The position numbers were made by a program, and so were the translations under genes. This document shows, in pieces, positions 4,992 to 60,259 of a stretch of 64,000 nt of DNA. The notes below the pieces were generated by a model. The model did not search any database. It was not told the DNA's origin and saw only the letters and a list, made by a program, of their open reading frames with translations. The DNA comes from Octopus sinensis (taxonomy: Eukaryota). Within the stretch, counting starts at the first letter, position 1, and every line of letters begins with the position of its first letter. The stretch lies in the NCBI RefSeq assembly GCF_006345805.1, contig NC_043024.1, positions 4,712,001 through 4,776,000 of the forward strand, read 5' to 3'.

Positions 4992-6239
4992 TTGCACTGT
5001 TTCTGTTTGGGCGGCCGTTTTCGGTCTGAGGAGATTATGAGCCGCCTCTCCCTAACTGGTGAGATGGCCGGGAGGAATTTATTTGAAAGTTTGCCGGAAT
5101 TGTCAACATCTGAGGAGGAGTTGGAAGAAGCAGTGGCAAAAATGGACAGGAAGCTGGAAAGTACCTACGCAGGAATAATGAGGAAGTCGATAGAAAAAGA
5201 GGTGGACCTGGCTAAACTACCAGGCTTCCAGAATTTTATGAAGGAGGAGGAAAACGACGAAGTCGAGCTGTCACCTCCAGCAAAGCGGGGCGAGTGGTTC
5301 AATCTTGGAACCATAAAATATGGAGTGTGCGTGAATGGGGGAAGAAGGATGGAAGTAGTCAATGTGGAAGTTATTGAAGAGGCATTGAAACAGACTGGAG
5401 AGGAAATTGTTTACCTGACTGGAGGAATGGAGTGTGGAACGGTAACGGTGCAGTATAGAAGTGAGAACGTCGCCAAAAAAATAGCAGCCAAGGTGGTGAA
5501 GACCGAGAAAATATACTTACTGCCCTCGTATCTAAATAGAAGGACCACAAGAATTAGGGTGGAGGGAATACCTCCACACCTAGCGGGTGAATACATAACG
5601 GCAGCGGTGATTAAGGGAAACGAGGAAAAGGTGGACATCCTCCACGCCACGATGAAGTGCGAAGGCGTGAGAGGTGCTACCTTGGACATGAATATGCAGA
5701 CGGAGGCGGAAGCAGTGGAAGGGCTGACAGATACTGTAGGAACGGGGAACATTATTATGAGAGTGTGGGTGGAGGGCAGGGCGCCCAGGTGCTATAAGTG
5801 TGGCCTGAGGGGTCACATAAGAGCCTACTGCCCTCTCCCTCCAAAGGAAAAGGAAATCGTTACGGAACCCCAAAAGAAGGAAGACACTAAAGAAAAGGAG
5901 AACCAAACAGAAAGGGAAGCAACTGAAGGGGAGGAGATCCAGCAAGAGTGGGAAGAAGGGATAAAAAAAGGAAAAGAAAGAAAAAAGAAAACAGTACGAA
6001 ACCCTAACCAACCCCAACACCACACGTACCCTCTGAATCCCATCCCTCCCCTGCAAACAGCGATTCCACCCACTCCCCGCCTACAAGAAAAACAAAAACA
6101 AATGCAGACACACAGAACGAACAAAGTCCCAGGACCTATTTTTTGTATGTTGCGAGGAGGAGGGACACCCAGAACTCGAAAAGGATGGTACATAAAGACT
6201 TATGGCGCGAACATGAAGATGGTAGTTACGCGGTTGTGA
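4992..6239 (+). CDS. Retrotransposon ORF1/gag-like nucleic-acid-binding protein (first ATG at 5037; probable frameshifted C-terminus to 6391)
   Basis: CYKCGLRGHIRAYC = CX2CX4HX4C; RIRVEGIPPHL RRM-like segment; charged C-terminal tail. Confidence 0.75.
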   Translation: MHCFCLGGRFRSEEIMSRLSLTGEMAGRNLFESLPELSTSEEELEEAVAKMDRKLESTYAGIMRKSIEKEVDLAKLPGFQNFMKEEENDEVELSPPAKRGEWFNLGTIKYGVCVNGGRRMEVVNVEVIEEALKQTGEEIVYLTGGMECGTVTVQYRSENVAKKIAAKVVKTEKIYLLPSYLNRRTTRIRVEGIPPHLAGEYITAAVIKGNEEKVDILHATMKCEGVRGATLDMNMQTEAEAVEGLTDTVGTGNIIMRVWVEGRAPRCYKCGLRGHIRAYCPLPPKEKEIVTEPQKKEDTKEKENQTEREATEGEEIQQEWEEGIKKGKERKKKTVRNPNQPQHHTYPLNPIPPLQTAIPPTPRLQEKQKQMQTHRTNKVPGPIFCMLRGGGTPRTRKGWYIKTYGANMKMVVTRL

Positions 6240-9350: not shown

Positions 9351-10547
9351 ATGTCGGAAGAATTAGGAAAATCATCATATGACTGTGACATCTGCAAAGA
9401 GTCATTCTTAGAAGAAAGTAAATTCAATCAACACAAACAAATTCATACAGAGGAAGCACCATATCACTGTAGTATCTGTGGTAAATCATTCTTAAGTAAC
9501 AGTCACTTAACACAACACATACGTATTCATACAGGAGAGAAACCATATACCTGTAATATCTGTGGTAAATCATTCTCTCGTACTCATAGCTTAAATATTC
9601 ACAAGCGTATTCATACAGGGGACAAACCATATCACTGTGATATTTGTGATAAATCATTCTCTGATGGCAGTGCCTTAATTCAACACAAACATATTCATAC
9701 AGGAGACAAACCATATACCTGTAATATCTGTGGTAAATCATTCTCTCAAAGCAGTAGCTTAACTCAACACAAACGTGTTCATACAGGTGAGAAACCACAC
9801 CACTGTGATATCTGTGGTAAATCATTCTCTGTTTCCAGTAGCTTAACTAAACACAAACGTCTTCATACAGGCGAGAAACCATATCGCTGTGATATCTGTG
9901 GTAAATCATTCTCTAATGACAGTAATTTAACTACTCACAGACAGGTTCATGGAGGGGAGAAACCATATCACTGTGATATCTGTGGTAAATCATTCTCTGT
10001 TGGCGGTAGCTTAACGAGACACAAATATATTCATACTGGAGAGAAACCATATCGCTGTGATATCTGTGGTAAATCTTTCTCTGATGGAAGTAGCTTAACG
10101 AAGCACATATGTATTCATACAGGGGACAAACCATATCACTGTGATATCTGTGGTAAATCATTCTCTCTAAATAGTCACTTAACAAACCACAAACGTATTC
10201 ACACAGGCGAGAAACCATATGACTGTGATATCTGTGGTAAATCATTCTCTCAAAGCAGCAGCTTAACTACTCACAAACGGGTTCATACAGGAGAGAAGCC
10301 ATATTCTTGTGATATCTGTGGTACATCATTCTCTGATGGCAGTACCTTAATTAAACACAAGCGTATTCATACAGGGGAGAAACCTTATCACTGTGATATC
10401 TGTGGTAAATCATTTTCTGTTAGCAGTAACTTGACTGCACACAAACGTATTCACACAGGAGAGGAACCATATCGCTGTGATATTTGTGGTAAATCATACT
10501 CTGATGGCAGTAACTTAACTGCACACAAACGTATTCATTCAGGGTAG
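9351..10547 (+). CDS. C2H2 zinc-finger protein (gene B), 14 tandem fingers, no N-terminal effector domain
   Basis: 398-aa ORF of CxxC-x12-HxxxH repeats with TGEKP linkers at 84-nt period. It ends at TAG in a linker; 3 more in-frame fingers follow to TGA 10812-10814. Confidence 0.9.
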
Positions 10548-13041
10548 AAACCATATCATTGTGATATCTGTAGTAAATCATTCTCACATACTCATAGCTT
10601 AGATATTCACAAGCATATCCATACAGGAGATAAAAACTACCACTGTGATATCTGTGGTAAATCATTCTCTGAGAGCCGTAGCTTAACTCGACACAAACGT
10701 ACTCATACAGGGGAGAAACCATATCACTGTGATATCTGTGGTAAATCATTTCCCGATGGTTGTAACTTAACTTCTCACAAGTGTATTCATACAGGTGAGG
10801 AACCGTATCACTGATATCTGCGGAAAATCATTCTCATAAAATCATCACTTAATTAAACACAAGTGCATTCGTTATGCAAAGGATCCATAGCACAGTGGCA
10901 TTTGTTGTATGACATTCCGTCAGAAGTTGAAGCTTGGACCTTATAAAGAACTGTACACATCATAGAAACTATATGAATGTGACATCTATAGTAAATCTTT
11001 GAAATGAAATTATCCATTATTGAATCAAAAGAGCATTGACTGAGGAAGGAAAACATATCACTGTGATGTTAAACCTGAATCATTCTATCAAAATGGTGAA
11101 TTGTTTGTACACAGTCCTATTAATATGAAAGATATAACTGTAACCTAAGCTATTTGTGCTAAATCAATCTATGAAAGTGATCAATCTCACCCCACCCCAT
11201 GTTTTGGACCCATAAAAGGGTTTTGTAGCATATTATGAGGTCAGGGTAGTTGATTCCACACAAAAAATCTAACATTTTGATTTTTTTCTTAGTGAAAATC
11301 ATGCGGGAGTTGATATAGAAATTTACCATAATGTTATTTAGCCTCAAATCAAACCTGATACAGCAAACGTATCATCAAAGACATTCCAGCCTTCAGCAAA
11401 CTGTCTTTTGAGGGATAATCTAGGACATTACGTACAATGGGCATGTGATTTAGATAGGGGTATACTTTGGCTGCTATTTTTAGCATGTCGAGCGACCAGG
11501 CAGAGGCTCTCTCATTGGTTCGATTGCGTGATGAAATTTTTTAACACATATAGGATCTTTTCGGTTTGAACGGCAGTTTTTTTAACATAATTTCTAGGTA
11601 ACTAAAAAATTTTCAACTTCGTATACTGGTAGAATGTGTTTATAAAACATCTTTCTCTCTTGGCTTTATTGAGAAAATTCTATACTTTGTAAGATATTTG
11701 TTGTTTTTTCTGCAATTTCAACCAATCAATGACGTCCATTGAGGTAAGGAAAAAATTCCTGTGCCGTATGAATATGTCCCTCGTTTAAGAAACAGATTGG
11801 GTTTATTTACATTTGTGAAGAAAAAAGATTATCCTTCCCCCCAACCCTAACCCTAAAATAGATTGAAATGCAGTAGATCGATACTAGGGTCATAATTATG
11901 GGTGACAATTTCATATGACACCGCTAGAGTAGAAAGATAAGACTTAGTTCCCCTTGTTCAGAGTTAATTCTTCCTAATTTTGTTGCTCCGTATGCATGTG
12001 TATTGCTTGATCAGTTCCACTTTACAACCGATATTGACGAGAAAATCTAATTAAATAGACACGTGATTGGTAATTAAGTGTCTAAAGAAACAGATGCAGC
12101 ATTTTTTTTTATTATGTTGACCTGTTAAATATTAATATTCGTCGTAAAAATTCTCTTGAAGCTGTCACTGTCCACTCTAACTTTTCACTCATTCAACATA
12201 TTCTCATATTTTCATCGTTGACTCTCTCTGAATATATATTACTATGTAAGTATATTTCTATTGTATATGTATCATATTACGTACGTCTGTTTGTTTCGAT
12301 GTGTTGAGTAAGTTACAAGAAAGAATCTCACTAAACAAAGACGAAATAGCGGAGGTAAAGGGCATGGACCGCACCTACCTTTCCCTAATTTTTTTGCGAT
12401 GGAAACCCACTTTTTCAACTTCGGTGAGGCTGTTCTTTCAATACTTTCGTTGTGTCTCCTTTACATTCAGATATTTCATTGCATCTTTCCTTATTTCCTA
12501 TATTATTTGTTAACGTCCGATGGATACCTTGTGTAGATAACTTTTCTCTTTCTTCCTCACATGTAAATTCCGCGGGAAAATTACGATGTAATTTCTAAGA
12601 CATGCGGAATGTATAAAAATACATTCTGCGTATTTCTGCTGTACATGCAAGGATTCAATCGGTTATGAAACCAACAAAGAAGGGAAAAAACCGATTGAAG
12701 AGCAATTTAGCTGTTATTTATCGCGCACCCCACGACCACCTGATACCTTCCGAGTTTCTTTCTCACTCTTACGTGCTAATGTTTTTTGATATCTTTTTTC
12801 ACATAAACACATTCAATGGTCCGTTGTTGGGATTTAAGGCATTATATATGAATTGCACTCTGTGTTTTTATGCTATTTTCAATTAATTACCTAAGTTATC
12901 CTTTTCTCTCTTCGTAATACATATATATTTATATTCAAATTACGATGAACGTAAACAAACAAACGAAGTTTGCTTTAGAAGCTTTTGAGATGTCTTAGAA
13001 AGTTTAAGAAATGATTTTAAATTCTCAAAGGCAGGATATTG

Positions 13042-13141
13042 NNNNNNNNNNNNNNNNNNNNNNNNNNNNNNNNNNNNNNNNNNNNNNNNNNNNNNNNNNN
13101 NNNNNNNNNNNNNNNNNNNNNNNNNNNNNNNNNNNNNNNNN
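13042..13141. other. Assembly gap (100 N)
   Basis: Run of exactly 100 N. Confidence 1.
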
Positions 13142-23150: not shown

Positions 23151-26100
23151 GTCTTTATGTGTTTTTTTTCTAAGATCAAAGAAAAATGGCTTCCACCTCA
23201 CCCCACCCCGTTTTTTTTACCCATAAAAGGGTTTTGTAGCATATTAGGATGTCAGGGTAGTTGATTCCACGCAAAAAATCTAATATTTTGATTTTTTTCT
23301 TAGTGAAAATCATGCGGGAGTTAATATAGAAATTTACCATAATGTTATTTAGCCTCAAATCAAACCTGATACAGCAAACGTATCATCAAAGACATTCCAG
23401 CCTTCAGCAAACTGTCTTTTGAGGGATAATCTAGGACATTACGTACAATGGGCATGTGATTTAGATAGGGGGATACTTTGGCTGCTATTTTTAGCATGTC
23501 GAGTTACCAGGAGGAGGCTCTCTCATTGGTTCGATTGCGTGATGAGATTTTTTAACACATATAGGATCTTCTCGGTTTGAACGGCAGATTTCTTAAAATA
23601 ATTTCTAGGTAACTAAAAAATTTTAAACTTCGTATACGGGTAGAATGTGTTTAAAAAACACCTTTTTCGCTTGGCTTTATTGAGAAAATTCTATGGTTTG
23701 TAAGATATTTGTTGTTTTTTCTTCAATTTCAACCAATCAATGACGTCCATTCAGGTAAAAAGAAACATTCTGTGCTGTATGAAGATGTCCCTCGTTTAAG
23801 AAACAGATTGGGTTTATTTACATTTGTGAAGAAAAAAAGGTACCCTTCCTCCCAACCCTATCCCTAAAACAGATTGAAATGCAATAGATCGATACTAGGG
23901 TCATAATTATGGGTGACAATTTCATATGACACCGCTAGAGTATAAAGACAAGATTTAGTTCCCCTTGTTCAGAGTTAATTCTTCCCAATTTTGTTGCTCC
24001 GTGTGCATGTGTATTGCTTGCTCAGTTCCACTTTACAACTGATATTTAAGAGAAAATCTAATTAAATAGACACGTGATTGGTAATTAAGTGTCTAAAGAA
24101 ACAGATGTAGCATTTTTTTTTATTATGTTGACCTGTTAAATATTAATATTCGTCGTAAAAATTCTCTTGAAGCTGTCACTGTCCACTCTAACTTTTCACT
24201 CATTCAACATATTCTCATATTTTCATCGTTGACTCTCTCTGAATATATATTACTATGTAAGTATATTTCTATTGTATATGTATCATATTACGTACGTCTG
24301 TTTGTTTCGATGTGTTGAGTACGTTACAAGAAAGAATCTCACTAAACAAAGACGAAATAGCGGAGGTAAAGGGCATGGACCGCACCTACCTTTCCCTAAT
24401 TTTTTGGCGATGGAAACCCACTTTTTCAACTTCGGTGAGGCTGTTCTTTCAATACTTTCGTTGTGTTCTCCTTTACATTCAGATATTTCATTGCATCTTT
24501 CCTTATTTCCTATATTATTTGTTAACGTCCGATGGATACCTTGTGTAGATAACTTTTCTCTTTCTTCCTCACATGTAAATTCCGCGGGAAAATTACGATG
24601 TAATTTCTAAGACATGTGGAATGTATAAAAATACGAGTGTGCACTTGAAATACTGAAACGAAAAGTAAATATTGTATACAGAAGAAATGGAACGGATTTT
24701 ATTTAAAACCTAGGAAGTCTTTATTTCCGGAGGTTCTTCTCCATCATTACAACTTACAATTAATATCTATTTTTCAAAGGAATCTTTCTTTAAGCACCCA
24801 ATGTAACCGCTTATCACATTTTTATTTTGGGGGAATTTTCAGAAAATTTCTACGTATTTCTGCTGTACATGCAAGGATTCAAACGGTTATGAAACCAACA
24901 AAGGGAAAAAACCGATTGAAGAGCAATTTAGCTGTTATTTATCGCGCACCCCACGACCACCCGATACCTTCCGAGTTTCTTTCTCACTCTTACGTGCTAA
25001 TGTTTTTCAATATCTTTTTTCACATAAACACATTCAATGGTCCGTTGTTGGGATTTAAGGCATTATATATGAATTGCACTCTGTTTTTTTATGTTATTTT
25101 CAATTAATTACCTAAGTTATCCTTTTCTCTCTTCGTAATACATATATATTTAAATTCAGATTACGATGAACGTAAACAAACAAACGAAGTTTGCTTTAGA
25201 AGCTTTGAGATGTCTTAGGAAGTTTAAGAAGTGATTTTAAATTCTCAGAGGCAGGATGTTGCTAATAATATAGCCTGAACAGGATAAGCTACCCCTATTT
25301 TGCAGAAAAGTGTTGGCGGCTGGCAATGAGATTCGAACTCACACCTTCGTGATTACGCGTCGCTGTATTTTTCACTCACCACGATAAACAATATTTCGTT
25401 ACGAAGTAAGAAGGAAGGGAAACATTAATTGTAACGTGTAAGAGTTTAAAAGTAAAGAAGAAAACGAGAATAATTTAATGTTAAAACTACATCATTTGCC
25501 CCCATTGAGAAGGATTGTCACCAATTTCCTTCTCCACCTCAACCAATAATTTTTCCTACATCAAAAATTCCCCACAAAAGATTTTGATGCTGTTAGTCAT
25601 CCATACTGATTATTTGCTGACTGTTATTCATGTTTCATGTAACACAGAATATTGACATTAAGCTGCCTGTATGTGTGTATTTATATATTTATAAATGTAC
25701 GGAAAGAGGCAGGGGAGGTGTGATATCTCTTTTACAACACATGACTGAGATGAAAGCATCAGATATCTAGTGTTATTGACATGTATATTGGTGTGTGTCT
25801 ATGACAGACTTACTACTCCCTGATATAAACTTCTTGAAAACAGAGAGATGGGATAAGTTTAATTGTTCAGATAAAGGATTGCTTCTACAATTTATGAAAA
25901 CAGAAATGTCGTAAATTTGCACTTTTGAATATCTGCCTTTTAAACATACTTGATGTCTTATATTATTTTTTCTATTCTTTCAGAAAATCACATGAAATTG
26001 GCTAAAAAGTATTACTTCTGTGTCTGAAATGTGCAAGAGATAATTTTCTCTTTTAAATGTACTTTGATGAATTTACAAAGAGTATTTGCGACATTTTTAA

Positions 26101-26273: not shown

Positions 26274-27563
26274 ATGTCGGAAGAAGTAAGAAAATCATCA
26301 TATGACTGTGAAGTCTGCAAAGAGTCATTCTTAGACGAAAGTAAATTCAATCAACACAAACAAACTCATACAGAGGAAGCACCATATCACTGTAATATCT
26401 GTGGTAAATCATTCTCTGTTGGCAGTAGCCTAACTCGACACAAACGTATTCATGCAGGCGACAAACCATATCGCTGTGATATCTGTGGTAAATCATTCTA
26501 TCAAGGAGGTAACTTAACTACGCACAAACGTATTCATACAGGTGAGAAACCCTATCACTGTGATATCTGTGGTAAATCATTCTCTCAAAGCGATAGCTTA
26601 ACCCAACACAAACGGGTTCATACAGGTGAGAAACCATATCACTGTGATATCTGTGGTAAATCATTCTCCAAGGGCAGTAGCTTAACTACGCACAAACGTA
26701 TTCATACAGGTGAGAAACCCTATCACTGTGATATCTGTGGTAAATCATTCTCTCAAAGCGATAGCTTAACTCAACACAAACGGGTTCATACAGGAGAGAA
26801 ACCATATCACTGTGATATCTGTGGTAAATCATTCTCTGAGAACAGTAGCTTAACTATACATAGACGTATTCATACAGGGAAGAAACCATATCACTGTGAT
26901 ACCTGTGGTAAATCATTCTATCATGAAGGTAACTTAACTACTCACAGACGGGTTCATGGAGGGGAGAAAACATATCACTGTGATATCTGTGGTAAATCAT
27001 TCTCTTATGGCAGTAGCTTAACTCGACACACGCGTATCCATACAAGTGAGAAACCCTATCACTGTGATATCTGTGGTAAATCATTCTCTCAAAGCGACAG
27101 CTTAACTCAACACAAACGGGTTCATACAGGAGAGAAACCATATCACTGTGATATCTGTGGTAAATCATTCTCTGAGAACAGTAGCTTAACTATACATAGA
27201 CGTATTCATACAGGGAAGAAACCATATCACTGTGATACCTGTGGTAAATCATTCTATCATGAAGGTAACTTAACTACTCACAGACGGGTTCATGGAGGGG
27301 AGAAAACATATCACTGTGATATCTGTGGTAAATCATTCTCTTATGGCAGTAGCTTAACTCGACACAAACGGGTTCATACAGGAGAGAAGCCATATCACTG
27401 TGATATCTGTGGTAAATCATTCTCTCATAGCGGTAGCTTAACTCAACACACACGTATCCATACAGGAGAGAAACCATATACTTGTGATATCTGTGGAAGA
27501 TCATTCTCTGAAAACAGCAGCTTAACTAAGCACAAGTGTATTCATACAGGGGCGGAACCATAA
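26274..27563 (+). CDS. C2H2 zinc-finger protein (gene F), 15 fingers
   Basis: 429-aa ORF, all fingers canonical, with internal 168-bp and 336-bp duplications. Stop is TAA where the KPY tyrosine codon would be. Confidence 0.9.
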
Positions 27564-27638
27564 CCTTGTAATATCCGTGGTAAATCTTTCTCTGAAAGCA
27601 GCAGCTTAGCTCGACACAAACGTGTTCAAATAGGGTAG

Positions 27639-27773
<135 letters not shown>

Positions 27774-28454: not shown

Positions 28455-28460
28455 AATAAA
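28455..28460 (+). terminator. Conserved poly(A) signal of the ZNF family (also 20425, 23123, 31292, 45235; minus strand 58651)
   Basis: AATAAA in the same context GTAATGCTGAATAAATAATATC at the end of each paralogous 3'UTR. Confidence 0.55.
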
Positions 28461-28585
28461 TAATATCAAACTTTTCTCTATTGTCCTTATGTGTTATGTA
28501 ATTACTCTGCAAGCAATATTATCCAAACCACACACAAAAATAATATACACACACACACATTATATATATATATATATATATATAT

Positions 28586-29100
28586 AAACGAGAAAGAAGC
28601 AACAAGAATGGATTGGTTTTTAGTACAATTGTTTCATACAAAGACAGGCTTTATTACAAGTTGCAAAAATTGCAGCAGATAAAAGTGTCCCGTACTCATC
28701 AGCTAAAATACATTTGAGTTCTCTAGACATCTTAGTGGGTGAGGTTATACTCATGAGATATTGGAGGTAGTTCCATTAGAGGCAGATATAGGTTGTAAAC
28801 AGTTTTCCAAAGTTCCTTAATGATGATGCACAGTCTTATCACAGATTTTTAAAAAAACTTATTAGTTTCGAAGAGATGAATCAATCCATAGTGTAGATTT
28901 AAATTTTCAGAGATATGAAGATGATGATGCACAGACTTATCACAGGTTATTAAAGACTTATTAGCTTCACAGAAAAGGTGAATTAATCCATAGTGAAGAT
29001 TTACATTTCCAGTGGTAAGATGAGGGATTTCATACTCACAGAATAACATGTAACAAAAACAATTTGCAAACATATTTACATTCCCATATAACAGTTAAAA
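28586..29100 (-). mobile_element. Penelope-like 3' remnant
   Basis: Hammerhead next to (TA)n at 28560-28585; ~100-bp internal duplication. No clear RT or GIY-YIG motif seen. Confidence 0.45.
28618..28708 (-). ncRNA. Type I hammerhead ribozyme (Penelope-like element type)
   Basis: Minus strand reads UUUUAG-CUGAUGA-[GUACGGGACA...UGUCUUUGUAU]-GAAA-CAAUUG-UA/CUAAAA. Helix I is 6 bp, helix II ~10 bp with a bulge, helix III is the palindrome ACAAUUGU, cleavage triplet GUA. Confidence 0.8.
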
Positions 29101-29264
29101 ACATCACCATTATTGTATTACGCATGCGTGGAAGTGTTTGTTTGACTAGGTGCTGCTGGCTTAATGACGCATGATACAAGTTAGAGAAGGGGTGTGTATT
29201 ATACACAAGGTTTAGGTGTTATGCTCAAGAATTTACAGTATATGTATATATATAGTAACCAGGT

Positions 29265-29580
29265 TTTTTGTGGTGAAAGTTGGTGTGCATCAGGGATGTG
29301 TGTTGTTTGCAATAGTGGTTGATGTGGAGAAGGAGAGTGCAAGAAAGAGACCGTAAATGGAGATACTGTATGCAGATGACTTGTTCTGATGAGAGAGAAG
29401 TTTTGGAAATGGAAGGAGGCCTTTGAAAGCAAGGGTTTGAAGGTAAACTTTGGGAAAACAAATGTGATAGTGAGTGGGGTGGAAGGAGAAGTGTTGGTGA
29501 GTAAGGTGGATCCATGTGGTGTCTGAGGGAGGAGGGTAATGGCAAATGCAGTGTTGTGTATGACATGTGATAACATTGGA
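29265..29580 (+). mobile_element. Degenerate RTE RT fragment
   Basis: Translates to KVGVHQG...ILYADDL...FESKGLKVNFGKT. Confidence 0.75.
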
Positions 29581-29732
29581 AAAATCCACATTTTTCATTA
29601 AAAAAATTAGGACCTGGGTTTGCACTCCCTTAGCAAATTTTGTTGCTGGGCCACTATTCATATGTGTAGGTAAAATCTGTAAAAGAAAACGAGATTTCAC
29701 ATGCACACATGAAGCTTGTAAGAACAAATATT

Positions 29733-30146
29733 GAATCCTTTCGGTTTGAACGGTAGTTTTTTCTAGTGGTGTCATGTGAAATTGTCACCCATAATTATGA
29801 CCCTAGTATCGATCTATTGCATTTTAATCTATTTTAGGGTTAGGGGTGGGAGGAAGGGTATCTTTTCTTCTTCAGAAATGTAAATAAACCCAATCTGTTT
29901 CTTAAACGAGGGACATATTCATACGGCACAGAATGTTTTTTTACCTCAATAGATGTCATTGATTGGTTGAAATTGCAGAAATTGAAGAAAAAAACTGAAC
30001 AAATATCTTACAAACTATAGAATTTTCTCAATAAAGCCAAGAGAAAAAGATGTTTTATAAACAGATTCTACCAGTATACGAAGTTTAAAAGTGTTTAGTT
30101 GCGTGGAAATTATTTTAAAAAACTGCCGTTCAAACCGAAAAGATCC
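29733..30146. mobile_element. Complete 414-bp MITE, ~29-bp TIR, 8-bp TSD (Merlin-like)
   Basis: TIR consensus GGATCTTTTCGGTTTGAACGGCAGTTTTT; CAAATATT at 29725-29732 and 30147-30154. Confidence 0.88.
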
Positions 30147-30289
30147 CAAATATTTAAGGCTTTTTTCACCAAGTTTAAAATACAACACACACACACAAGA
30201 AGCAGCACGCAGTTAACAAGACAACACATGCTCACGGAAACTAACAGAAAGTTGGTTTTATTGTCTCCTCAAAACGAATGATTACACAT

Positions 30290-31380
30290 TTTTTATGTTG
30301 ACCCGAAAAATACGAATTAATGTTTGTTGTAAGGAATAAGAAATCCTCTTGAAGCTCTCATTGTCCACTCTGACTTTAGTTCTAACCACTTCAACATATT
30401 CTCACATCTTCGTTGACTCTCTCTCTCTTCGCATATGCATTACTATGTAAGTATTATATTTATATAAACATTTCTATTGTATATGTGTCATATATATATT
30501 TCTTTACTACCAAGAAGGGGCTAAACATAGAGGGGAAAAATAAGACAGACAAACGGATAAAGTCGATTACACCGACTCCAGTGCGTAACTGGTATTTAAT
30601 TTATCGACCCAGAAAGGATGAAAGGCAAAGTCGACCGCGGCGGAATTTGAACCCAGAACATACATCTATGGTAAATCTTTGACATTAAATCATCCATTAT
30701 TGAATCAAAAGAGTATTGACAGAGGAAGGAAAACATATCACCGTGATGTTAAACCTGAATCATTCTTTCAAAATGGTGAATTGTTTGTACACAGTCCTAT
30801 TAATATGAAAGATATAACTGTAACCTAAGCTATTTGTGCTAAATCAATCTATGAAAATGATCAATTATTGAAATGTAAATGCATTGATACAGAAGAGGAA
30901 CCACGATGATGATGATCCTCATCATTTAAAATTCTCCTATTCATGCTTCTGTGGATCAGATGGAATTCATTGATGCAGACTTTCTACATCTGGGTACCTT
31001 TCTTGTGACCAATTCTCACCTGTTTCCAAGCAAGGAGATATTTTCCCTGGTGAGACATATTTTACACAGAGGACTGGAAATGAACAACTGCACAAGTATT
31101 ACGGTCATGATGGCCCTTTACGAACATCACATAATATCTGGACAAGGGTACACATCCACACACACACACACACACACTCACATAAACTGTTGTATGTCTG
31201 AAGAATTTCTCATGGGAAATATATGTTACATGTTTTCTACACATGTAAAAGTTTATAATTCCTATTAGGAAATGAAACACATGTAATGCTGAATAAATAA
31301 TATCAAACTTTTCTCCGGTTTCCTTGTGATTCGTAATTACCTTGCAAAAAATATTATCCAAACCTCCCACAAAAATAATG
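30290..31380 (+). pseudogene. CDS-less ZNF gene remnant (exon 1 + donor, SINE, then 3'UTR)
   Basis: Family exon 1 and GTAAGT at 30447, SINE at 30501-30659, decayed-finger 3'UTR from 30660, AATAAA at 31292. Confidence 0.7.
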
Positions 31381-33504: not shown

Positions 33505-36500
33505 GTTGTGCGTGGAATGCGTCCCCGCTTTTGGCACTATTTTATAAGTATTACTACGCTGTGTCTAAAGTATAGAGGTGTCGCTGCGCTGAATGTAGTC
33601 CAGTTCGTGTAACATGAAAAAGTAAGTAAACACGTAAAAGAATAACAATGGCTTCATATTGGTTGTCTATCCCATTAGAACGAAACTACACATAACATGG
33701 TGGCAGCAGTAAATAATTAATCGGAAACTGTGCCTTTACAACAAAACAGAAAGACAACGAACCAGAAATTAACAAACAAAACATCGCTTCGTCTTCGGAC
33801 ACACATACACGAGGATCCAAAATGGCGACCCCCGTCACCGTACAGATGAATCTACATCCGATCATGAACTGGGACTCCGATGATATCGTGGAAGCGTCTA
33901 AGAAATTCAAAACTCAACTAGCTTTCGAAAGTTTCCTGAAAGGCAAGACTGAAGATGAAAATGTAAGCCACATCCTTTTATGGACGGCAGAAAAAGGTCT
34001 AGACCTATTCAATAGCTGGGACATGTCAGAATCGTATTGCAATAACCCAGACACACTTTTAGAGAAATTTGAAAGGCACCTAGAGCCCAGATAGAACCAT
34101 AGAATTCACAGATACAAATTCCAGGGCCTGAAACAAGACCCACAAGAAAAGATTGACAATTTCCTGTGCAGACTAAAGAATGTTGCCGAAAAATGCAAAT
34201 TCAAAGATAAGGACGAAAGAATTGTTGATCAATTAATATGGGGGTGTGCTCATAAAGAAGTTCAGAAATCCCTCATAGGTAAGGACGCTCTCCAGTTGAT
34301 AGAAGCAGTAGACACTGCAAGACCATTCGAAGCCACTACCAAACAAATGGCCTCACTTACCTTACAAACAAGCTCACTTGGCAGCAGTGTAGATATTGTA
34401 TCTAGGCACAGGACGAAACATACCTGCAAACAAAGAACATGCCAGTACTGTGGTACAGAGCATGAGTTCGACAACCGGAAGAAATGTCCTGCATTCGGTA
34501 CACACTGCAAAGCATGTGGTAAACCTAACCACTGGGAAAAAATGTGTAGGTTGGCAAAATCCCAGAAATACAAGCCCCAATTTTCAAAGAGAAGACAAAG
34601 AGATATACATGCACAACTACAGGAACAAAACACCTCAGAGGAGGAATTCTTGGCAGTCGGCACAATAAATGTGCATGAGATGGGGAATGACGACCAGAAA
34701 AAAAATGAGGCATACACAACAATAAGAATACAAAAGAAGTCTGGCAAGAAACGAATAAACATTGACTTAAGGCTGAAGATTGACACTGGAGCCCAGAGTG
34801 ATATCTTGCCTGTCAACCTCTACAAAAAGATGTTCCCAGAACACATCACAAGAGGATAAAGTCAAAGAAGGAATCCTCACACCAAGTGATGTAATCCTCA
34901 CTGCGTACGGAGGTACCAGGATTCCACAACTGGGCAAAACAACAATCACAGGGACACACAAAGGAAAAACAATCAATTCTTGGACTCAATACCTGCAAAA
35001 AGCTAAATATTGTGTCAATCAATGGTGAAGTGAAGGCAACTCCGAGCAGGATTGACAGAGATATGCCTATCAAAGACCGACCACCATTAACAAACAAAGA
35101 GGAACTGATAAGCATGTACCCTGAATGCTTTGACGATACAGTCGGGTGCTTTGTGAAATGTCGATACCATATAACAGTCAACCCCAATATCAAACCAATT
35201 GTTCACCCACCTCGCCGCGTCCCTCTAGAACTAAATGAGAAGCTGAAGACAGAGTTGGACAGAATGGAAGAAAAAAAGAAATAATCACCAAAGTGACACA
35301 ACCAACAGACAGGGTGAATTCAATTGTAATCAAAGAAAAACCCAATGGTACCCTACGGATATGCCTTGACCCAAGGGACCTGAACAAGGCATTAAAAAGA
35401 GAGTACCATCCAATTCCAACCCTTGAAGAAATCACACCATCATTGGCTGGGTCCAAATTATTCAGCAAACTGGATGCCAGCAATGGGTACTGGAATGTAA
35501 AGATAGACAAAGTCATCCATGCTCACTACCTTCAACACACCATTTGGCAGATATCGATTCAACCGACTCCCATTTCGATTGAAGGTGAGCCAAGATGTTT
35601 TCCAGCGCCAAATAGATGAGACCTACCAAGGCTGCAAGGGAGCAATTGGAATAGCAGATGACATCCAAGTGAATGGCAAGGATGAGACCACACACGACTT
35701 CAGTTTACATGAAGCTATGGAGAAAACCCGACAAGCAGGCATCAAACTCAATGCAGACAAGTGTGTGATAAAAGAAAAGGAGTGCAAATTCTTTGGAATT
35801 ATATACTCTGCAGAGGGAGTTAAACCAGACCCCGCTAAAGTGGAAGCCATCAGAGACATTAAAGAACCTAAAGACAAGAAGGAACTCAAGAGCTTCCTGG
35901 GACTCATTCACTACATGGGAGCCTTCATACCCAAGTTGGCCGATCACACTGCAAATCTCCGAGAACTAAACAAAGATGACGTAGAGTTTGATTGGTGTGC
36001 TTCACACACACAGGATTTCAAAGGAATCAAAAAGCTCATCAGTAAAGAGGCAACTCTGCAATACTATGACAGACGCAAACCAGTAACACTCCAAGTCGAT
36101 GCTTCTATGAGAGGAGTTGGTGCAGCACTGATACAGGAAGGTAAACCCATTGCATATGCCTCGAAAGCTCTCTCACCCACAGAGACAAGGTACGCACATA
36201 TTGAAAGGGAACTCCTGGCAGTAGTATATGGATGTGAAAAGTTCCATACATACCTGTATGGCAGACATTTCAATAGTGAAACAGACCATCGCCCGCTAGA
36301 ACAAATACATAGAAAAAACCTGACGAAAGCACCAGCCAGACTGCAAAGATTACTGTTAAGGCTTCAAACATACGACTATGATATCAGGTACAAGCCAGGA
36401 AAAGACCTGATATTGGCGGATGCTCTTTCCAGACTATCCTCACATGATAAACAGGAGATGTAAGGACAAAGCATAAAGGTCCACCACATTATAAATGTAA

Positions 36501-37118
36501 CAACCACCCATCAGCAGACAACGAGTACAACACCTGCTGCATCAGTGACAACACCCACAGAATCATCATCCCAATGGGCACCAACCACCCATCAGCAGCC
36601 CAACAACACACTTCAGATACCGGTGCGAAGCACAAGATCCACCAGATGTAGAAAGAACATCCTGCCACCGGTTCGATACCGTTAAAGAAAAAATATTTTC
36701 TCTTTTTATTCATGATAAAGTTTTTTCAAAACAAAAAAAAATTAAATGAAAAGATAAATAACTAATTCTGCTCGATTACAAAGCAGAGGCAGAATAATCT
36801 CACGGTTTCTGCTGCAGGAGTGCCACCTCACGCTGACAGTCCATTATATTTGTCCTCACTGCCAAAAGACCCCTTTTTTTTTACAAGAAGGGATGTTACA
36901 CATTCATATCTATGCGTGGGCGTGCGTGTGTGAAATACGTCCCCGCTTTTGGCACTATTTTATATTTGTATTACTACGCTGCGTCTAAAGTTACAGAGGT
37001 GTCGCTGCGCTGAATGTAGTCCAGTCCTTGTAACATGAAAAAGTAAATAAACACGTAAAAGAATAACTATGCTTCGTATTGAGTTGTTTATCCCATTAGA
37101 ACGAAACTACACATAACA
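33505..37118 (+). mobile_element. Ty3/Gypsy LTR retrotransposon, decayed, integrase deleted
   Basis: 5' LTR remnant 33505-33697, PBS TGGTGGCAGCAG at 33698. Gag CKACGKPNHWEKMC, protease DTG, RT IADD, RNase H DAS/ERE/TDH. PPT AAGAAGGGA, then 3' LTR TG...CA at 36894-37118. Confidence 0.92.
35519..36463 (+). pseudogene. Gypsy RT-RNase H fragment
   Basis: 314-aa ORF with TFNTPFGRYRFNRLPF, IADD and ERELLAVV motifs; frameshifted relative to upstream pol pieces. Confidence 0.9.
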
Positions 37119-38164
37119 GTGATGAAGCCAAATATTGAAGAAATCTCTTTCACAAAATACCAAATCTATTAAAGTACAGCCGCAATTCTTTAAAGACTGG
37201 AGGTAGTTCATTGTCAAAACTCTTCCTAATTAAGTGTATTTCTTGTTCTTGTTTCTCACGCATCTTGATTGTTTGATCAGTTCCACTTGACAACTGATAT
37301 TTAAGAGAAAACCCAATCAAATATATACAAATGATTGGTAATTAACTGTCTAAAGAAACAGATACAGCATTTACGATTATGTGGACCTGAAAAATATTAA
37401 TTAACGTTTGTTGTAGAAACCTAGAAATTCTCTTGAAGCTGTCGTTGTCCACTCTGACTCCAGTTCTCACATCTTCCTCCTTCACTCTTTCTCTCCATAC
37501 CTATTACTATGTAAGTATTTATTTAAACATTTCTATTATATATGTGTCGTATTATGTACATTTATTTGTTTCGATGTGTTGAGAAAGTTAAAAGAAAAAA
37601 AATCTCACTAAGACGAAATTATACGAAAGGCTGTAATTTTAATACTTTCATTGTGTTGTCGTTTTCTTTTAGACATTTCATTGCACTTTTGGTTATTTTC
37701 AAAATTATTTGTAAAAACGTCGGATCAATCCCTTGTTTAGATAACATTTATCTTTCTTTCTAACGTGTAAATTCGACAATTTCGTTAAATGCGGGAAAAT
37801 TACGATGTAATTAGTAAGAAATGGGAAATGTATAAAAATACGAGTGTGCACTTGAAATACTGAAACGAAAAGCAAATATCGTAACGAGAGGAAATGGAAC
37901 GGCTTCTATTTGAGACATAGGAAGTCTTTATTTCCGGTGGTTCTTCTGCATCATTAAAAGTTAGAATTAATATATTTTTCTAATTTATTTAATTTTTGTG
38001 TGTGTGGAGTGTTGCTTTAAGCACCAAATATAATCCCTCGTCACATATTTTTATTTGGGGGAATTTTCAGAAATTTTTGCGTACGAGAATTCGTTCGGTC
38101 ATGCAACCAAAAAAAGAAAAAAATCAACTGTGATTTATGAGCTATTTAGCTGTTATTTTTCGCA

Positions 38165-38927
38165 GGCGAAGTTTCGCATGTCGTAGCACAGATTTCCGTC
38201 GATTTCCGTAAAAAACTTTTATTTTTTTACATAAGTAATGAGAGCGAAAGAGACTAAGAGGAAGCGATTTTATGACGAGAAGGTTTCTCTTTGAAATCGG
38301 CCTGTGTGTTTGATGGGGTGTGGGAGACAGACAGTATGTTGTGTAAGTGAAGTGCTTCTGTTAGTGTGTGCGAAGAGACAGAGAGAGTAATGTGTGAAAG
38401 AGAGAGATAACTGATTTTTTACTCGGTGTATGTGTGTATGCATGTATGTGTATATGTATGTATGCATGTATGTGTATATGTATGTATGCATGTATCTATG
38501 TATGTGTGTGTGTGTATGTATGTATGTATGTATGGCCGATTCATCGTAATTTTTTACTCGGTGTATGTGTATATGTATGTCTGCATGTATGTGTGTGTGT
38601 GTATGTATCTATGTGTGTGTGTGTGTGTAAGTATGTGTGTGTGTATGTATGTGTGTGTGTGTATGTATCTATGTGTGTGTGTGTATGTATGTATGTATGT
38701 ACTCGGTGTATGTGTATATTATGTCTGTCTCTTCGCACACACTAACAGAAGCACTTCACTTACACACATACTGTCTGTCTCCCACACCCCATCAAACACA
38801 CACGGCCGACTTCAAAGTGAAACCTTCTCGTCGTAAAATCGCTTCCTCTTAGCCCTTTCGCTCTCATTACTTTATTCAAAAATAAAATTTTTTACGGAAA
38901 TCTGTGCTACTCAACCGAAACTATGCC
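38165..38927. mobile_element. 763-bp foldback element, ~215-bp TIRs, 8-bp TSD
   Basis: GGC...GCC ends; TTTTCGCA at 38157-38164 and 38928-38935; empty site in the paralog at ~7660. Confidence 0.9.
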
Positions 38928-39243
38928 TTTTCGCACATCTCACGACCAGTATGGTAATAATTCTCTACTTAAGTTCCTCTGGGCTTGCAGGAAGAGGGGA
39001 GACATAGACTAGGCCCTCCCTGAGCAAGAAATGGCAAGGTGTCATTGCCTTCTTCAGGACACGCCAAACTCTTTGGAGGAATCTGGCTTTCATTCTCCAC
39101 ATCAACCAATAATTTTTCCTACATTAAAATTTCCCCACTAAGGATTTTGATGCTGTTAGCGAGACATCAATATTATTTACTGACATTTATTCATCTTTTA
39201 TGCTCACCAAAATATTAACATTGAACTAACCGTATATATATCA

Positions 39244-41921
39244 CCATCATCATCATTTAGCGTCCGCTTTCCATGCTAGCATGGGTTGGAAGGTTCAACT
39301 GGGGTCTGTGAAGCCAGAAGGCTGCATCAGGCCCAGTCTGATCTGGCAGTGTTTCTACGGCTGAATGCCCTTCCTAACGCCAACCACTCCGTGAGTGTAG
39401 TGGGTGCTTTTTACGTGCCACTGGCACGGGGGCCAGGCGAGGCTGGCAACGGCCACGAACGGATGGAGCTATTACGTGCCACCGGCACGGGGGCCAGTCG
39501 AGACCGGCAACGGCCACGAACGAATGGTGCTACGTGCCACCGGCACGGGGGCCAGGCGGGGCTGGCAGCGACCACGAACGGATGGTGCGTTTACGTGCCA
39601 CCAGCACGGGGGCCAGGCGGGGCTGGCAACGGCCACGAAGGGATGGTGCTTTTACGTGCCACTGGCACGGAGGCCAGTCGGGGCGGTGCTGGCAACGGCC
39701 ACAATCGGATGGTTCGCTTACTTGCCACCGGCACTGGTATCACAGCTGCAATTTCCATTGATGTTGATCGACTTCGATTTTGGTTCTGCTTTCTGATATC
39801 TGATTTGATTTGGTTTGATTTTGATTTTGTTTTTCACTTGCCTCAACGGGTCTTCACAAGTGGAGTTTTGTGTCCCAAGAAGGAAAGGTATGTATAAGTC
39901 GACTGGCTACATACCAGGTAGAGGCCACGGGTTATGGTCTCACTAATCTTGCCGGGTCTTCTCACGAACAGCATACTTCCATACGTCTCGGTCTCTAGTT
40001 CGAAGGTTGTGCTTCACCACCTCGTCCCAGGTTTTCCTGGGTCTGCCTCTTCCTCTGGTTCCCTCAACAGCTAGGGTGTGGCACTTTTGCACACAACTAT
40101 CTTCAGCCATTCTCGTCACATGACCATACCAGCGCAAACGTCTCTCTTGCACACCACAAGTGATGCTTCTTTGGTCCAACTTTTCTCTCAAGGTACTTAC
40201 ACTCTGTCGATTATGAACACTGACATTACACATCCATCGGAGCATACTGGCTTCATATCCTCAGCAGTCACAGCCCATGTTTCACTACCATGTAGCATGG
40301 CTGTACGCACACATGCATCATACAGTCTGCCTTTTACTCTGAGCGAGAGGCCTTTTGTCACCAGCAGGGGTAAGAGCTCTCTAAACTTTGCCCAGGCTAT
40401 TCTTAATCTAGCAGTTACACTTTCAGCACACCCACCCCACTACTGACTTGGTCACCTAGGTATCGTAAGCTATCAACTACTTCTAGTTTTTCTCCCTGGA
40501 ACGTGGTAGAAGTTGGTCTCTGCACATTTTCAGTGTTTATTGCTCCTGAGCATCTGACACAGACAAAAACTATTTTCCTAGTTAGCCTTCCTTTGACATT
40601 GCTGCACCTCTTATGTGTCCATAGCTTACACTTGGTGCACCTTATAGTTTCTACCTACACCTTTTTTTACAGATCGAGCAGGGCCATCTACCTGAAGGCA
40701 TTTGTGATTGGTCTATCTTCCTACTTATTAGGACTTTCGTTTTGGCTAGGTTGATTCTAAGGCCCTTCGATTCTAAACCTTGCTTCCACACCTGAAACTT
40801 CGCCTCCAGTTCTGATAGTGACTCAGCAATTAGAGCAAGGTCATCAGCATAGAGGAGCTCCCAGGGGCATCATGTCTTGAATTCCTCCATTATTGCCTGG
40901 AGGACTATGATAAATAGGAGGGGACTGAGGACTGAACCTTGGTGGACCCCAACCTCTACCCGGAGTTCTTCACTGTACTCATTGCCAACCCTCACCTTAC
41001 TAGCAGCGTCTCTGTACATTGCTCGCACAGCTCTCACTAACCATTCATCTGTCCCTAGCTTCCTCATTGACCACCAGATAAGGGATCGGGGGACCCTGTC
41101 GAAGGCTTTCTCTATGTCAACAAAAGCCAGGTACAGGGGCTTATCTTTGGCTGGGTATTTCTCCTGCAGCTGTCTTACCTGGAATATAGCATCAGTAGTA
41201 CTTTTCCCTAGCACGAACCCAAATTGCATCTCATCTAAGCTAACCCTCTCTCTAATTAGTTGGGCTATAACCCTCTCCGTAACCTTCATTACCTGATCCA
41301 GCAGCTTGATACCCCTGTAGTTATTTGTATCTAGGGCGTCACCTTTACCTTTGTAGCAGTTGACTATTATGCTGCTACACCAGTCATTGGGTATGACTCC
41401 TTCATGTATCACCTGGTTAACTATACGGGTGACTAGGCTATAGCTGACACTACCAGATATTTTGAGCATCTCTGCAGTAATTCCTGATGGGCCTGGGGCT
41501 TTCCCTGTTTTCATGCTTGTAATTGCCTTAACTACTAAGGAACTGTCAACTCGGATTGCTGGTCCCTCTGTTGGGTCGACATTTGGCAGACTCTCTTTAT
41601 CCCATTCATTTTCCTCATTCAGCAACCTTTTATAGTGGCGTCTCCAAACCTCTCTCTTAGCATCCTCATTTAGTGCAAGTGAACCGTCATCCTTGCGAAC
41701 ACATTTCTCTCCTACCATGTCACGATTCTCTCTCACACACTGTCTTGCAACACGAAATACCTCAGGTCTTTCATCCTCATGGCGCAGAACATTGGCAAAG
41801 TTTTTCCTATCTGCTTCCCCTCTGGCTAAATACACCTGCCTCATAGATTCCCTTCTGGCAGTCTGATACACTTCCCTGCTACAACCGTTCTCCCAAGCCT
41901 GTTTCTTTTGTCTAATAGCCC
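39244..41921 (-). mobile_element. 5'-truncated RTE-clade LINE with intact 3' end
   Basis: RT motifs (KAPGPSG, QFGF, KAFDRV, QGSVLSP, YADD). C-terminal RRLRWYGHV...GRGRPRKTW; long 3'UTR ending in (GAT)n. Confidence 0.92.
39405..39735 (-). repeat. ~60-bp GC-rich minisatellite (~6 units) in the RTE 3'UTR
   Basis: Repeated TACGTGCCACCGGCACGGGGGCCAGGCGGGGCTGGCAACGGCCACGAACGGATGG. Confidence 0.8.
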
Positions 41922-41929
41922 TATACATA

Positions 41930-42250
41930 TATATGTATTTGTATATATGGCTCCCATGCAGGTAACATGTAAAAAGTACCATTCGAGCATGATTGATGCT
42001 AGTGCTGCCTGACTTGCACCCATGCCGGTGGCACATACAAAGCTCCTTTCAAGCATGGTCGATGCCAATGCTACCTGACTGGCTCTGTGGCACATAAAAG
42101 GCAACTGCTACACGCTCAAACAGCATCCAGCTGTAGAAATCTTGCCTGATAAGATTGAAACCTTGTTCAGCCTCATGGCTTGCCAATCCTCAGTCAAACC
42201 TCACAACCCATGCCAGCATGGAAGGCAGATGTTAAATGATGATGATGATG
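41930..42250 (+). mobile_element. RTE-family 3'UTR fragment
   Basis: Ends in GCATGGAAGGCAGATGTTAAAT(GAT)n. Confidence 0.7.
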
Positions 42251-42993
42251 AAGGTAGAGAAAGAGCGATATCTATTTTAGCAAACAAAGATACAAGACTG
42301 CAATGAAAACATCAGAAATCTAGTGTCATTAATATGTATATTGGTGTGTGTGTGTGTGTGTGTGGAAGTGTATATATGACAGACTTTATTTACCAGGAGT
42401 TGGTATTATAATAGATGTGTCTACTCTATGATATAAACATTTTGGTAATGCAAAAATTGGATAAATTTAATTGTTCAGATAAAGGATTGCTTCTACAATT
42501 TATGAAAACAGAAATGCCGTAAATTTGGGCTTTTGAATATCTGCCTTTTAAACATACTTGATGCCTTATATTATTTCTTCTGTTCTTTCAGAAAATCACA
42601 TGAAATTGGCTAAAAAGTATTTTTTACTTTTAAAGAATCATCAATATGTATCATGTTTGAAAGACTCTGCAAAGATATTCTACAAACGTATAATCCTGCT
42701 TCTATAAAACATTGCTGAATTACAGTAAAATATTTCCTCTGAGAGAGAAAGCATTTCTTTACTTCTGTGTCTGAAATGTGCAAGAGATAATTTTCTCTTT
42801 TAAATGTACTTTGATGAATTTACAAAGAGTATTTGCGACATTTTTAAATATTGGCAATGATCACATTTAGAAGAAATATAAGAGAAGTGATATTTGTTTG
42901 GAATAAACTATAAAAGCAAAAAGAAGCAAAATATCCATGAATTTTGGTGAGAGGAGAAATATTATTGAAAAGTTGTTGATCTGTACAACTTGA

Positions 42994-44520
<1,527 letters not shown>

Positions 44521-59221: not shown

Positions 59222-60259
59222 TTATGGTTTCTCCTCTGTATGAATATGTTTGTATTCAGTCAAGATGCTCTGAAGAGAGAATGATTTACCACAGATATCA
59301 CAAAGAAATGGTCTCTCCTCTGTATGAACATGGTTGTGTACAGTTAATTGTTGGTTTGTAGAGAATGCTTTGCCACAGATATCACTCTGGTATGGTTTCT
59401 CTCCTATATGAACATACCTGTGCATAACTAATTGTTTGTTTTGAGAGAATGAATTACCACAGATATCACAATGATATGGTGTTTCTCTTGTGTGTATAAG
59501 TTTGTGTGCAGTTAAATGGTGATTTTTAGAGAATGATTTACTGCAGATATCACACTGATATGGTTTCTCACCTGTATGAACCCGTTTATGAGCAATTAAG
59601 CTACCTCTAGAATAGAATGATTTACCACAGATATCACAGTGATAAGGTTTCTCTCCTGTATGAATATGGTTGTGTTTAGTTAAGCTACTGTTCTCAGAGA
59701 ATGATTTACCACAGATATTGCAGTGATATGGTTTCTCTCCTGTATGAATGCGGTTGTGTTTAGTTAAGCTGCTGCTTTTAGAGAAAGATTTACCACAGAT
59801 ATCACAGTGATAAGATTTTTTTCCTGTATGAATACGTTTGTGTCGAGTGAAGCTACTGCCATCAGAGAATGACTTACCACAGATATCACACTGATAAGGT
59901 TTCTCTCCTGTATGCACTTGTTTGTGAGTAGTTACCTCACTTCTTTCATAGAATGATTTATCACAAATGTCACACTGATATGGTTTGTCTCCTGTATGAC
60001 TATGCTTATGTACAGTTAAATAGATATTTTGAGAGAATGATTTATTGCAGATATCACAGTGATATATTTTCTCTCTTGTATCAATTTGTTTATGACTGAC
60101 TAATTCAGAATCTTGACTGACTGATTTATCACAGGTATCATGGTGATTTTGCTTCTCATCTGTATGAATGCATTTGTGTCTAGTGAGTTCACCTTTTTCT
60201 GAGAATGACTCTTTGCAGACATCACAGTCATATGATGATTTTCTTAATTCTTCCAACAT
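59222..60259 (-). CDS. C2H2 zinc-finger protein (gene J), 12 repeats of which 9 are canonical
   Basis: 345-aa ORF. Repeats 2, 11 and 12 have lost Zn ligands. Same 5' leader as the other paralogs (60260-60690). Confidence 0.85.
   Translation of the reverse strand: MLEELRKSSYDCDVCKESFSEKGELTRHKCIHTDEKQNHHDTCDKSVSQDSELVSHKQIDTREKIYHCDICNKSFSQNIYLTVHKHSHTGDKPYQCDICDKSFYERSEVTTHKQVHTGEKPYQCDICGKSFSDGSSFTRHKRIHTGKKSYHCDICGKSFSKSSSLTKHNRIHTGEKPYHCNICGKSFSENSSLTKHNHIHTGEKPYHCDICGKSFYSRGSLIAHKRVHTGEKPYQCDICSKSFSKNHHLTAHKLIHTRETPYHCDICGNSFSQNKQLVMHRYVHIGEKPYQSDICGKAFSTNQQLTVHNHVHTEERPFLCDICGKSFSLQSILTEYKHIHTEEKP

Follow-up and report, generated by a model that had tools for sequence, protein, structure and literature searches.

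The type I hammerhead ribozymes of metazoans combine a 6-bp helix I and a 4-bp helix II with a helix III of 1–2 bp that ends in a small palindromic loop, and they act as dimers (PMC4209133). This short palindromic helix III has been described for metazoan, Penelope-like element (PLE) and retrozyme hammerheads (PMC4209133, PMC7229834). The minimal hammerheads of PLEs (min-HHRs) form consensus families with covariation, and are marked by a nucleotide that sits between position 9 and position 10.1, a G10.1–C11.1 pair and palindromic positions 15.2–16.2 (PMC4209133). They are located in pseudo-LTRs that flank an RT + GIY-YIG ORF, or in recognisable truncated PLEs (PMC4209133). In vitro, most genuine hammerheads of PLEs and retrozymes show poor cleavage (PMC4209133), and cleavage was reported for one of nine predicted retrozyme dimers (bioRxiv 10.64898/2026.07.22.740005). 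The hammerhead of the anole Poseidon element is assisted by protein and dispensable for insertion in vitro (PMC11167929).

PLE hammerheads are found near the 3' ends of the elements, with tails of 30–40 bp, and the Neptune and Naiad PLEs prefer (TA)n targets (PMC8557442). Most PLE insertions are truncated at the 5' end and keep one terminal repeat (bioRxiv 10.64898/2026.07.22.740005). Searches for PLE hammerheads used a spacing of 7–17 nt between the core halves and turned up a few "half-core" cases with the halves 35–50 nt apart, a spacing noted in PLE 3'UTRs (PMC8557442). Naiad PLEs occur in Architeuthis, Euprymna and Octopus spp., and in cephalopods they are old remnants only (PMC8557442). 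The giant squid genome contains Penelope elements and 235 matches to the Rfam Hammerhead_1 model (PMC6962438).

Here, we describe a hammerhead-like motif on the minus strand of a 64-kb stretch of Octopus sinensis DNA (CM016886.1, about 4,712,001–4,776,000), hereafter called the window, just past the 3' end of a zinc-finger (ZNF) gene. An initial annotation had read the site as a complete type I hammerhead ribozyme. The observation is confirmed; its interpretation is only partly supported.

Structure of the motif and its closest relatives

The window contains ten CUGAUGA sites, and in a descriptor scan of both strands a single one of them completed the motif (Table 1). The initial annotation had listed all core nucleotides on the minus strand, a cut between 28624 and 28623, a 6-bp helix I, a bulged helix II and a palindromic helix III; the scan recovered every core nucleotide and the position of the cut, and all three helices are present as drawn. 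The conserved positions C3 U4 G5 A6 N7 G8 A9, G12 A13 A14, A15.1–U16.1 and H17 are all occupied, H17 being an A, and alignment of the core predicts that the cut falls in the GUA triplet at that boundary. The topology is that of type I, with three helices abutting the core and helix I open, and the helices are thermodynamically weak. Stem II can be drawn in two ways, either as seven contiguous pairs (GUACGGG/UUUGUAU), four of which are G·U, or as two paired stretches of 4 and 6 bp separated by a bulge. Because CAAUUG is self-complementary, the palindromic 15.2–16.2 and loop 3 are present. Helix III would have 2 bp and an AAUU tetraloop in a modeled monomer, and would become an 8-bp intermolecular helix in a dimer.

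Table 1. Coordinates of the motif, its parts and the flanking features in the window.
Feature	Position	Strand	Remarks
Whole hammerhead-like motif	28708..28618	-	UUUUAG / CUGAUGA / 60-nt stem II domain / GAAA / CAAUUG / U-A(cut) / CUAAAA
Helix I, 5' strand UUUUAG	28703..28708	-	6 Watson-Crick pairs with CUAAAA, 5 of them A-U
Core C3–A9, CUGAUGA	28696..28702	-	Exact match
Stem II domain, 60 nt, closing pair G10.1·U11.1	28636..28695	-	
Core G12 A13 A14 A15.1, GAAA	28632..28635	-	Sole motif-compatible GAAA 3' of CUGAUGA
Helix III palindrome ACAAUUGU, A15.1–U16.1	28625..28632	-	Self-complementary; aligns to RF00163 helix III <<<<>>>>
A17, predicted cleavage site in GUA triplet	28624	-	Placed by core alignment
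Helix I, 3' strand CUAAAA	28618..28623	-	Pairs with UUUUAG
AATAAA poly(A) signal of upstream ZNF gene	28455..28460	+	Invariant in six paralogous 3'UTR copies
(TA)13 microsatellite	28561..28586	.	TRF; possible insertion target of a motif-carrying element
Motif-bearing segment, ~650 bp	28587..29238	-	Bounded by TA tracts (28561-28586, 29239-29254); single-copy in window; candidate inserted fragment

The motif shares its type I topology, an identical catalytic core, the 6-bp helix I, C15.2–G16.2, C1.1–G2.1 and a low-GC setting with the hammerheads of RF00163 and the non-LTR retrozymes (PMC7229834). Like RF00163, it has an 8-nt palindromic helix III (consensus ACGcgCGU, here ACAAUUGU) made of 2 bp and a palindromic tetraloop. 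Unlike RF00163, however, it has a 60-nt stem II where the model has 4 bp capped by a short loop, a G·U at 10.1–11.1 and GUA instead of the usual GUC, and it lacks the loop 1/loop 2 tertiary-contact elements. In non-LTR retrozymes, a type I hammerhead is found in each of a set of 170–400-bp tandem repeats, whereas the octopus motif lies outside any such array (PMC7229834).

That PLEs carry dimer-acting minimal hammerheads with a palindromic helix III, as the initial annotation stated, is correct (PMC4209133). The motif resembles these in its palindromic 15.2–16.2 and loop 3, which imply dimer action, in a longer-than-usual helix II, for which seven pairs can be drawn, and in being a lone copy, since PLE hammerheads are most commonly present as dispersed single copies left by truncated elements. 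It also adjoins a (TA)n tract, as do Neptune and Naiad insertions. A PLE min-HHR is nevertheless not supported: of the four min-HHR hallmarks, the motif shows only the palindromic 15.2–16.2, and no PLE ORF or pseudo-LTR was found near the motif in a six-frame Pfam scan of 28549–30660. There is no extra unpaired nucleotide between A9 and 10.1, because the G right after A9 is required as 10.1; shifting 10.1 by one nucleotide would set U opposite U. The conserved G10.1–C11.1 pair is replaced by a G10.1·U11.1 wobble. Moreover, the core halves are 60 nt apart, whereas stem II of the PLE min-HHRs is a 6–8-bp hairpin, and helix I has 6 bp rather than 4–5.

Structurally, we assign the site only to the broad class of the "type I hammerhead motif", and not to the PLE min-HHRs or the retrozymes, because the tested features that define those two groups were lacking. 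A core split by a long insert, at the 3' end of a gene, is also found in the rodent Clec2 hammerhead. The latter is the discontinuous hammerhead that Martick et al. reportedly described in 2008 in rodent Clec2 3'UTRs, on the sense strand and conserved among species; its cleavage is said to have been demonstrated, and to lower expression. Unlike the Clec2 hammerhead, the octopus motif lies on the antisense strand past the 3'UTR and has its insert in a different helix. A 44-aa ATG-to-stop ORF (28620–28754, minus strand) reads through the motif; it is most likely meaningless, has no relatives and was not on record by exact look-up.

Rarity, Rfam score and predicted folding

As decoys for the descriptor, we permuted the two core words in all 2519 other ways and left the helix rules unchanged. 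In the real window, none of the 2519 decoys matched with a helix I of at least 5 bp and a helix II of at least 4 bp, and one matched when these limits were lowered to at least 4 and at least 3 bp, respectively. In 4000 simulated windows (first-order Markov), the cores and the helix III rule alone occurred 1.9 times per window, and 0.005 times when a helix I of at least 6 bp was added. With a helix II of at least 4 bp as well, there were no matches in the 4000 windows, even for a helix I of at least 5 bp, and extrapolation gave ~1.4e-4 per window.

The Rfam model RF00163 (Hammerhead_1) aligned over its full length (model 1–45 of 45) to 28618–28708 on the minus strand, with a sub-threshold score of 19.4 bits compared to the gathering score of 34 bits, and with E = 0.012 for 103 nt searched against 4227 families. 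Rescaled, this amounts to E ~2e-3 for RF00163 alone across the whole 64-kb window. The alignment contains a 54-nt insertion at stem II, where the consensus has 8 nt; outside the core, the motif agrees with the consensus at C15.2–G16.2, C1.1–G2.1, U1.2–A2.2, G10.1 and U10.2. In the Infernal check proposed with the initial annotation, the model aligns end to end, but below the gathering score and only when ~100 nt (103 nt) were searched. A whole-window Rfam search at the gathering threshold gave no match, and a search of 401 nt at E ≤ 10 did not recover the hammerhead. The core and the topology bear out the type I reading, but "complete type I hammerhead ribozyme" claims too much for a match with this Rfam score, a 60-nt stem II, a G·U at 10.1–11.1 and very weak helices.

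The UGAUGA of the core is also a C box, and weak Rfam matches to DdR5 (13.4 bits) and sR35 (11.7 bits) could be taken to indicate a box C/D snoRNA-like element, which we find hardly conceivable. All of these matches are far under their gathering scores (45–80 bits), and the lack of a CUGA D box beside the 3' strand of the terminal stem led us to reject the candidate.

In folding calculations, the helix I duplex, with five A-U pairs and one G-C pair, came to -1.6 kcal/mol, and the helix III self-duplex required for a dimer came to -6.4 kcal/mol. The 91-nt motif RNA folded no better than its shuffles (z = -0.10). The stem II domain alone formed one long imperfect hairpin of -11.5 kcal/mol (z = -1.3), and 11% of the shuffles folded as well. 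The hammerhead fold, at -10.7 kcal/mol, was 3.3 kcal/mol worse than the MFE fold at -14.0 kcal/mol, in which part of the GAAA and the cleavage site are hidden in a GUAUGA/UUGUAC hairpin. These models suggest that cleavage of a lone motif transcript would be poor or absent.

Our estimates put the frequency of so full a match at ~1e-4 to 2e-3 per 64-kb window. The motif is thus unexpected for a single window, yet tens are expected per octopus-sized genome: for a genome that we take to be 2.7 Gb in size, the rescaled E-value predicts ~75 equally good RF00163 matches. In addition, the motif was picked by eye in a scan, and the weight of its per-window rarity depends on the number of windows scanned. 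It could be a chance match in an A+T-rich genome, a CUGAUGA that falls 60 nt from a GAAAC-palindrome-GUA between A-U-rich flanks drawable as helices, with neither ribozyme descent nor activity, an explanation that we consider nearly as likely as the retroelement remnant discussed below. A long spacer that can vary freely, a stem II rich in G·U (4/7 pairs) and a helix I of nearly all A-U pairs are typical of false positives. Without the stem II requirement, the expectation is ~5e-3 per window, and a deliberately generous type I descriptor (CUGANGA, helix I of at least 4 bp, helix II of at least 3 bp, spacer of 4–100, any small helix III) found a match in 3.7% of the simulated windows. The number of equally good matches predicted for the genome, the sub-threshold Rfam score that was missed in the wider searches, the folding no better than shuffles, and a single copy with no relatives in window, protein or metagenome searches (see below) also point to chance. 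On the other hand, the strict motif is expected only ~1e-4 times per window, the non-core positions listed above match the natural consensus, the adjacent (TA)13 (p ~0.02) fits PLE biology, and hammerhead-bearing repeats exist in cephalopods.

Genomic setting and search for relatives

The motif lies 158 nt past the AATAAA of the upstream ZNF gene (ORF 26274–27563, plus strand), on the opposite strand, in agreement with the initial annotation, which had placed it antisense to the gene, ~160 bp from the poly(A) signal and beside (TA)n; the distance from the 3' end of the motif to the (TA)13 tract is 31 nt. Positions no more than 35 nt from a (TA)n tract of at least six units make up 2.1% of the window, corresponding to a probability of ~0.02 for this placement by chance. 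We used the annotation of GCA_006345805.1 (CM016886.1:4737519-4765762), which is 100% identical to positions 25519–53762 of the window. The motif is intergenic there, both neighbouring gene models are on the plus strand, and no minus-strand gene is annotated near the motif in this interval.

The ZNF gene belongs to an array in which C2H2 zinc-finger genes stand in tandem and in inverted orientation, at 9351–10547 (+), 26274–27563 (+) and 59222–60259 (-), with partial copies near 18.2–20.5, 22.2–23.2, 30.7–31.4, 43–45.3 and 47.1–47.9 kb. Its 3'UTRs show conservation, with an AATAAA that does not vary; homology ends ~90 nt beyond this signal, in a (CA)n/(TA)n seed. The ZNF ORF carries a recent internal duplication (26355–27757; 336-bp offset, four fingers), and a block of ~110 residues is present twice, almost verbatim. 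Its best protein matches are generic C2H2 proteins of vertebrates, at ~50% identity, and the protein itself was not on record by exact look-up. The window also includes an assembly gap of 100 N at 13042–13141.

Five other copies of the ZNF 3'UTR are present in the window, none of them with the motif. Homology between the paralogous 3'UTRs stops at ~28548–28555, in the (CA)n/(TA)n seed and shortly ahead of the motif. Two paralogous units are ordered 3'UTR, ~390 bp, MITE, repeat; in the motif-bearing unit, the same MITE and repeat are preceded by 1.17 kb of unrelated DNA, and the ~390 bp at the corresponding place in the paralogous units are unrelated to the motif segment. The 1.17 kb are made up of (TA)13, the 650-bp single-copy segment with the motif and a 102-bp x 1.9 tandem repeat, the TA tract at 29239–29254 and a degraded fragment of a LINE reverse transcriptase on the plus strand. 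Since the paralogous units lack this DNA, the motif lies in lineage-specific, probably inserted DNA, outside the duplicated gene unit.

These results bear on the suggestion in the initial annotation that the ribozyme could cut antisense RNA on its way into the gene. A functional hammerhead, kept by the host to cut antisense or convergent transcripts of the minus strand ahead of the ZNF gene, would fit the intact core and the position and strand of the motif relative to the conserved AATAAA; nevertheless, we consider it very unlikely. That the five other paralogous ZNF 3' ends lack the motif argues that it is not part of the gene unit; no minus-strand gene is annotated nearby, and the suggestion is pure conjecture. 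Furthermore, the lone copy has no dimer partner, its 8-nt A-U-rich palindrome is worth only -6.4 kcal/mol, and the monomer combines a 2-bp helix III with a disfavoured active fold. The poor in vitro cleavage of most genuine PLE and retrozyme hammerheads (PMC4209133) also speaks against it. We give still less credence to a single-copy hammerhead with an expanded stem II that the host has kept for cutting RNA strand-specifically at the 3' boundary of a single ZNF gene of the array, where it would trim convergent or antisense transcripts ahead of the gene.

Several repeats and transposon remnants lie in the same region. A tandem repeat at 28820–29012 (102 bp x 1.9, 82% identity) is found 112 nt from the motif and is single-copy elsewhere in the window; it is the only tandem repeat nearby and does not contain the motif. 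The MITE-like element at 29728–30151 is ~420 bp long with 35-nt terminal inverted repeats, and has copies at 56–450, 11541–11928 and 23552–23939, with 88–91% identity among the copies. The copy beside the motif has the opposite orientation to the other three; that of the flanking repeat (30289–30493) is unchanged. LINE-type reverse transcriptase remnants are present at ~29260–29620 (+) and 40870–42036 (-), with the common motif VGVHQG(C/S)VL...YADD. The former is frameshifted and 5'-truncated and begins right after the TA tract at 29239–29254; a stitched peptide from it matched RVT_1 with E = 0.12. A Ty3/gypsy RT/RNase H ORF is located at 35519–36463, and the gene model 35519–43762 ("zinc finger protein 431-like") joins it to zinc-finger exons ~7 kb downstream; this model is probably an annotation chimera of transposon and gene. 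Finally, a 415-aa ORF at 4992–6239 (+) combines a CCHC zinc knuckle (CYKCGLRGHIRAYC) with a tail rich in Glu and Lys, and resembles a retroelement gag.

No second copy of the motif was found in the window, which covers ~28 kb on one side of it and 35 kb on the other, by blastn with word sizes of 9 and 7 or by nhmmer, and searches with each half at three mismatches found no half copies there. Other repeats of the region are present in 4–6 copies in the 64 kb, compared to the single motif segment. The BLAST check for family copies that had been proposed was thus negative within the window, and the dimer action that had been envisaged needs a second copy, whereas the window contains no tandem partner. 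When the 12 stop-free peptides of 28588–29240 were compared as a chimeric query to 5.8 billion proteins, nothing was found at E ≤ 10. The exact motif pattern had no matches in metagenome contigs. These negatives from outside the window are weak, as the collections searched offered no cephalopod genome DNA. In the six-frame scan of 28549–30660, there were no Pfam domains on the motif strand, and no RT/GIY-YIG remnant; the only match was a weak LINE-type RVT_1 on the opposite strand. Nor did we find a tRNA-derived SINE.

The motif might instead be one copy of an uncharacterised multi-copy octopus hammerhead family with a native stem II of ~60 nt, active in multimeric transcripts. The perfect core and helix junctions suggest youth or selection, stem II folds as one continuous hairpin, and PLE 3'UTRs with widely spaced core halves have been noted (PMC8557442). 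This family is improbable, however, as no other copy was found in 64 kb even though regional repeats recur there, the stability of stem II is not significant and there is no tandem arrangement.

Proposed origin of the motif

The explanation that we prefer, tentatively and at a little less than an even chance, is that the motif is the inert, solitary remnant of the end of a hammerhead-bearing retroelement; its retroelement origin, its inactivity and its lack of function are inferred. The source would likely have been a 5'-truncated PLE or a solo unit of non-LTR-retrozyme type that inserted into the (TA)n microsatellite right behind the ZNF poly(A) site. In such elements, the hammerhead resides in the terminal repeat and is thought to process multimeric element transcripts, its short palindromic helix III joining it to another copy. 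With one copy left, the motif is predicted to show little or no cleavage, even if the minus strand were transcribed; this prediction is based on the single copy, the A-U- and G·U-rich helices and the 60-nt stem II. The motif would have no role for the neighbouring ZNF gene.

Several lines of evidence led us to favor such a remnant. A full core with three correctly placed helices is rare per window, and the architecture matches the Rfam type I consensus. Hammerheads and PLEs occur in cephalopods, and the adjacent (TA)13, with its chance probability of ~0.02, fits the (TA)n targets of Neptune and Naiad PLEs. A lone motif would also fit the truncated state of most PLE insertions, which keep one terminal repeat. 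The setting, a 650-bp segment specific to one ZNF unit and beside transposon debris, likewise points to an insertion.

Other observations argue against a retroelement remnant. The window, protein and metagenome searches found no relative of the segment and hence provide no family, consensus or covariation, and there is no RT/GIY-YIG remnant on the motif strand within 2 kb. Hallmarks of the PLE min-HHRs are missing, and the 60 nt between the core halves compare with 7–17 nt in PLE searches. The Rfam score is 19.4 rather than 34 bits, and there is no thermodynamic signal (z = -0.10 and -1.3; +3.3 kcal/mol relative to the MFE). Lastly, one would expect mutations in the core of an old relic, but this core is perfect.

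If the motif arose by chance, it would serve as a calibration point, indicating that A+T-rich animal DNA contains a perfect core with three drawable helices about once per 0.03–0.5 Gb. If it is real, the current picture of hammerheads and of ZNF gene regulation would stay the same, and the motif would be one more unannotated hammerhead of retroelement type in a cephalopod genome. As such, it could be the seed for an octopus family of hammerhead- or PLE-derived repeats, possibly with an unusually long stem II, that Rfam thresholds have missed.
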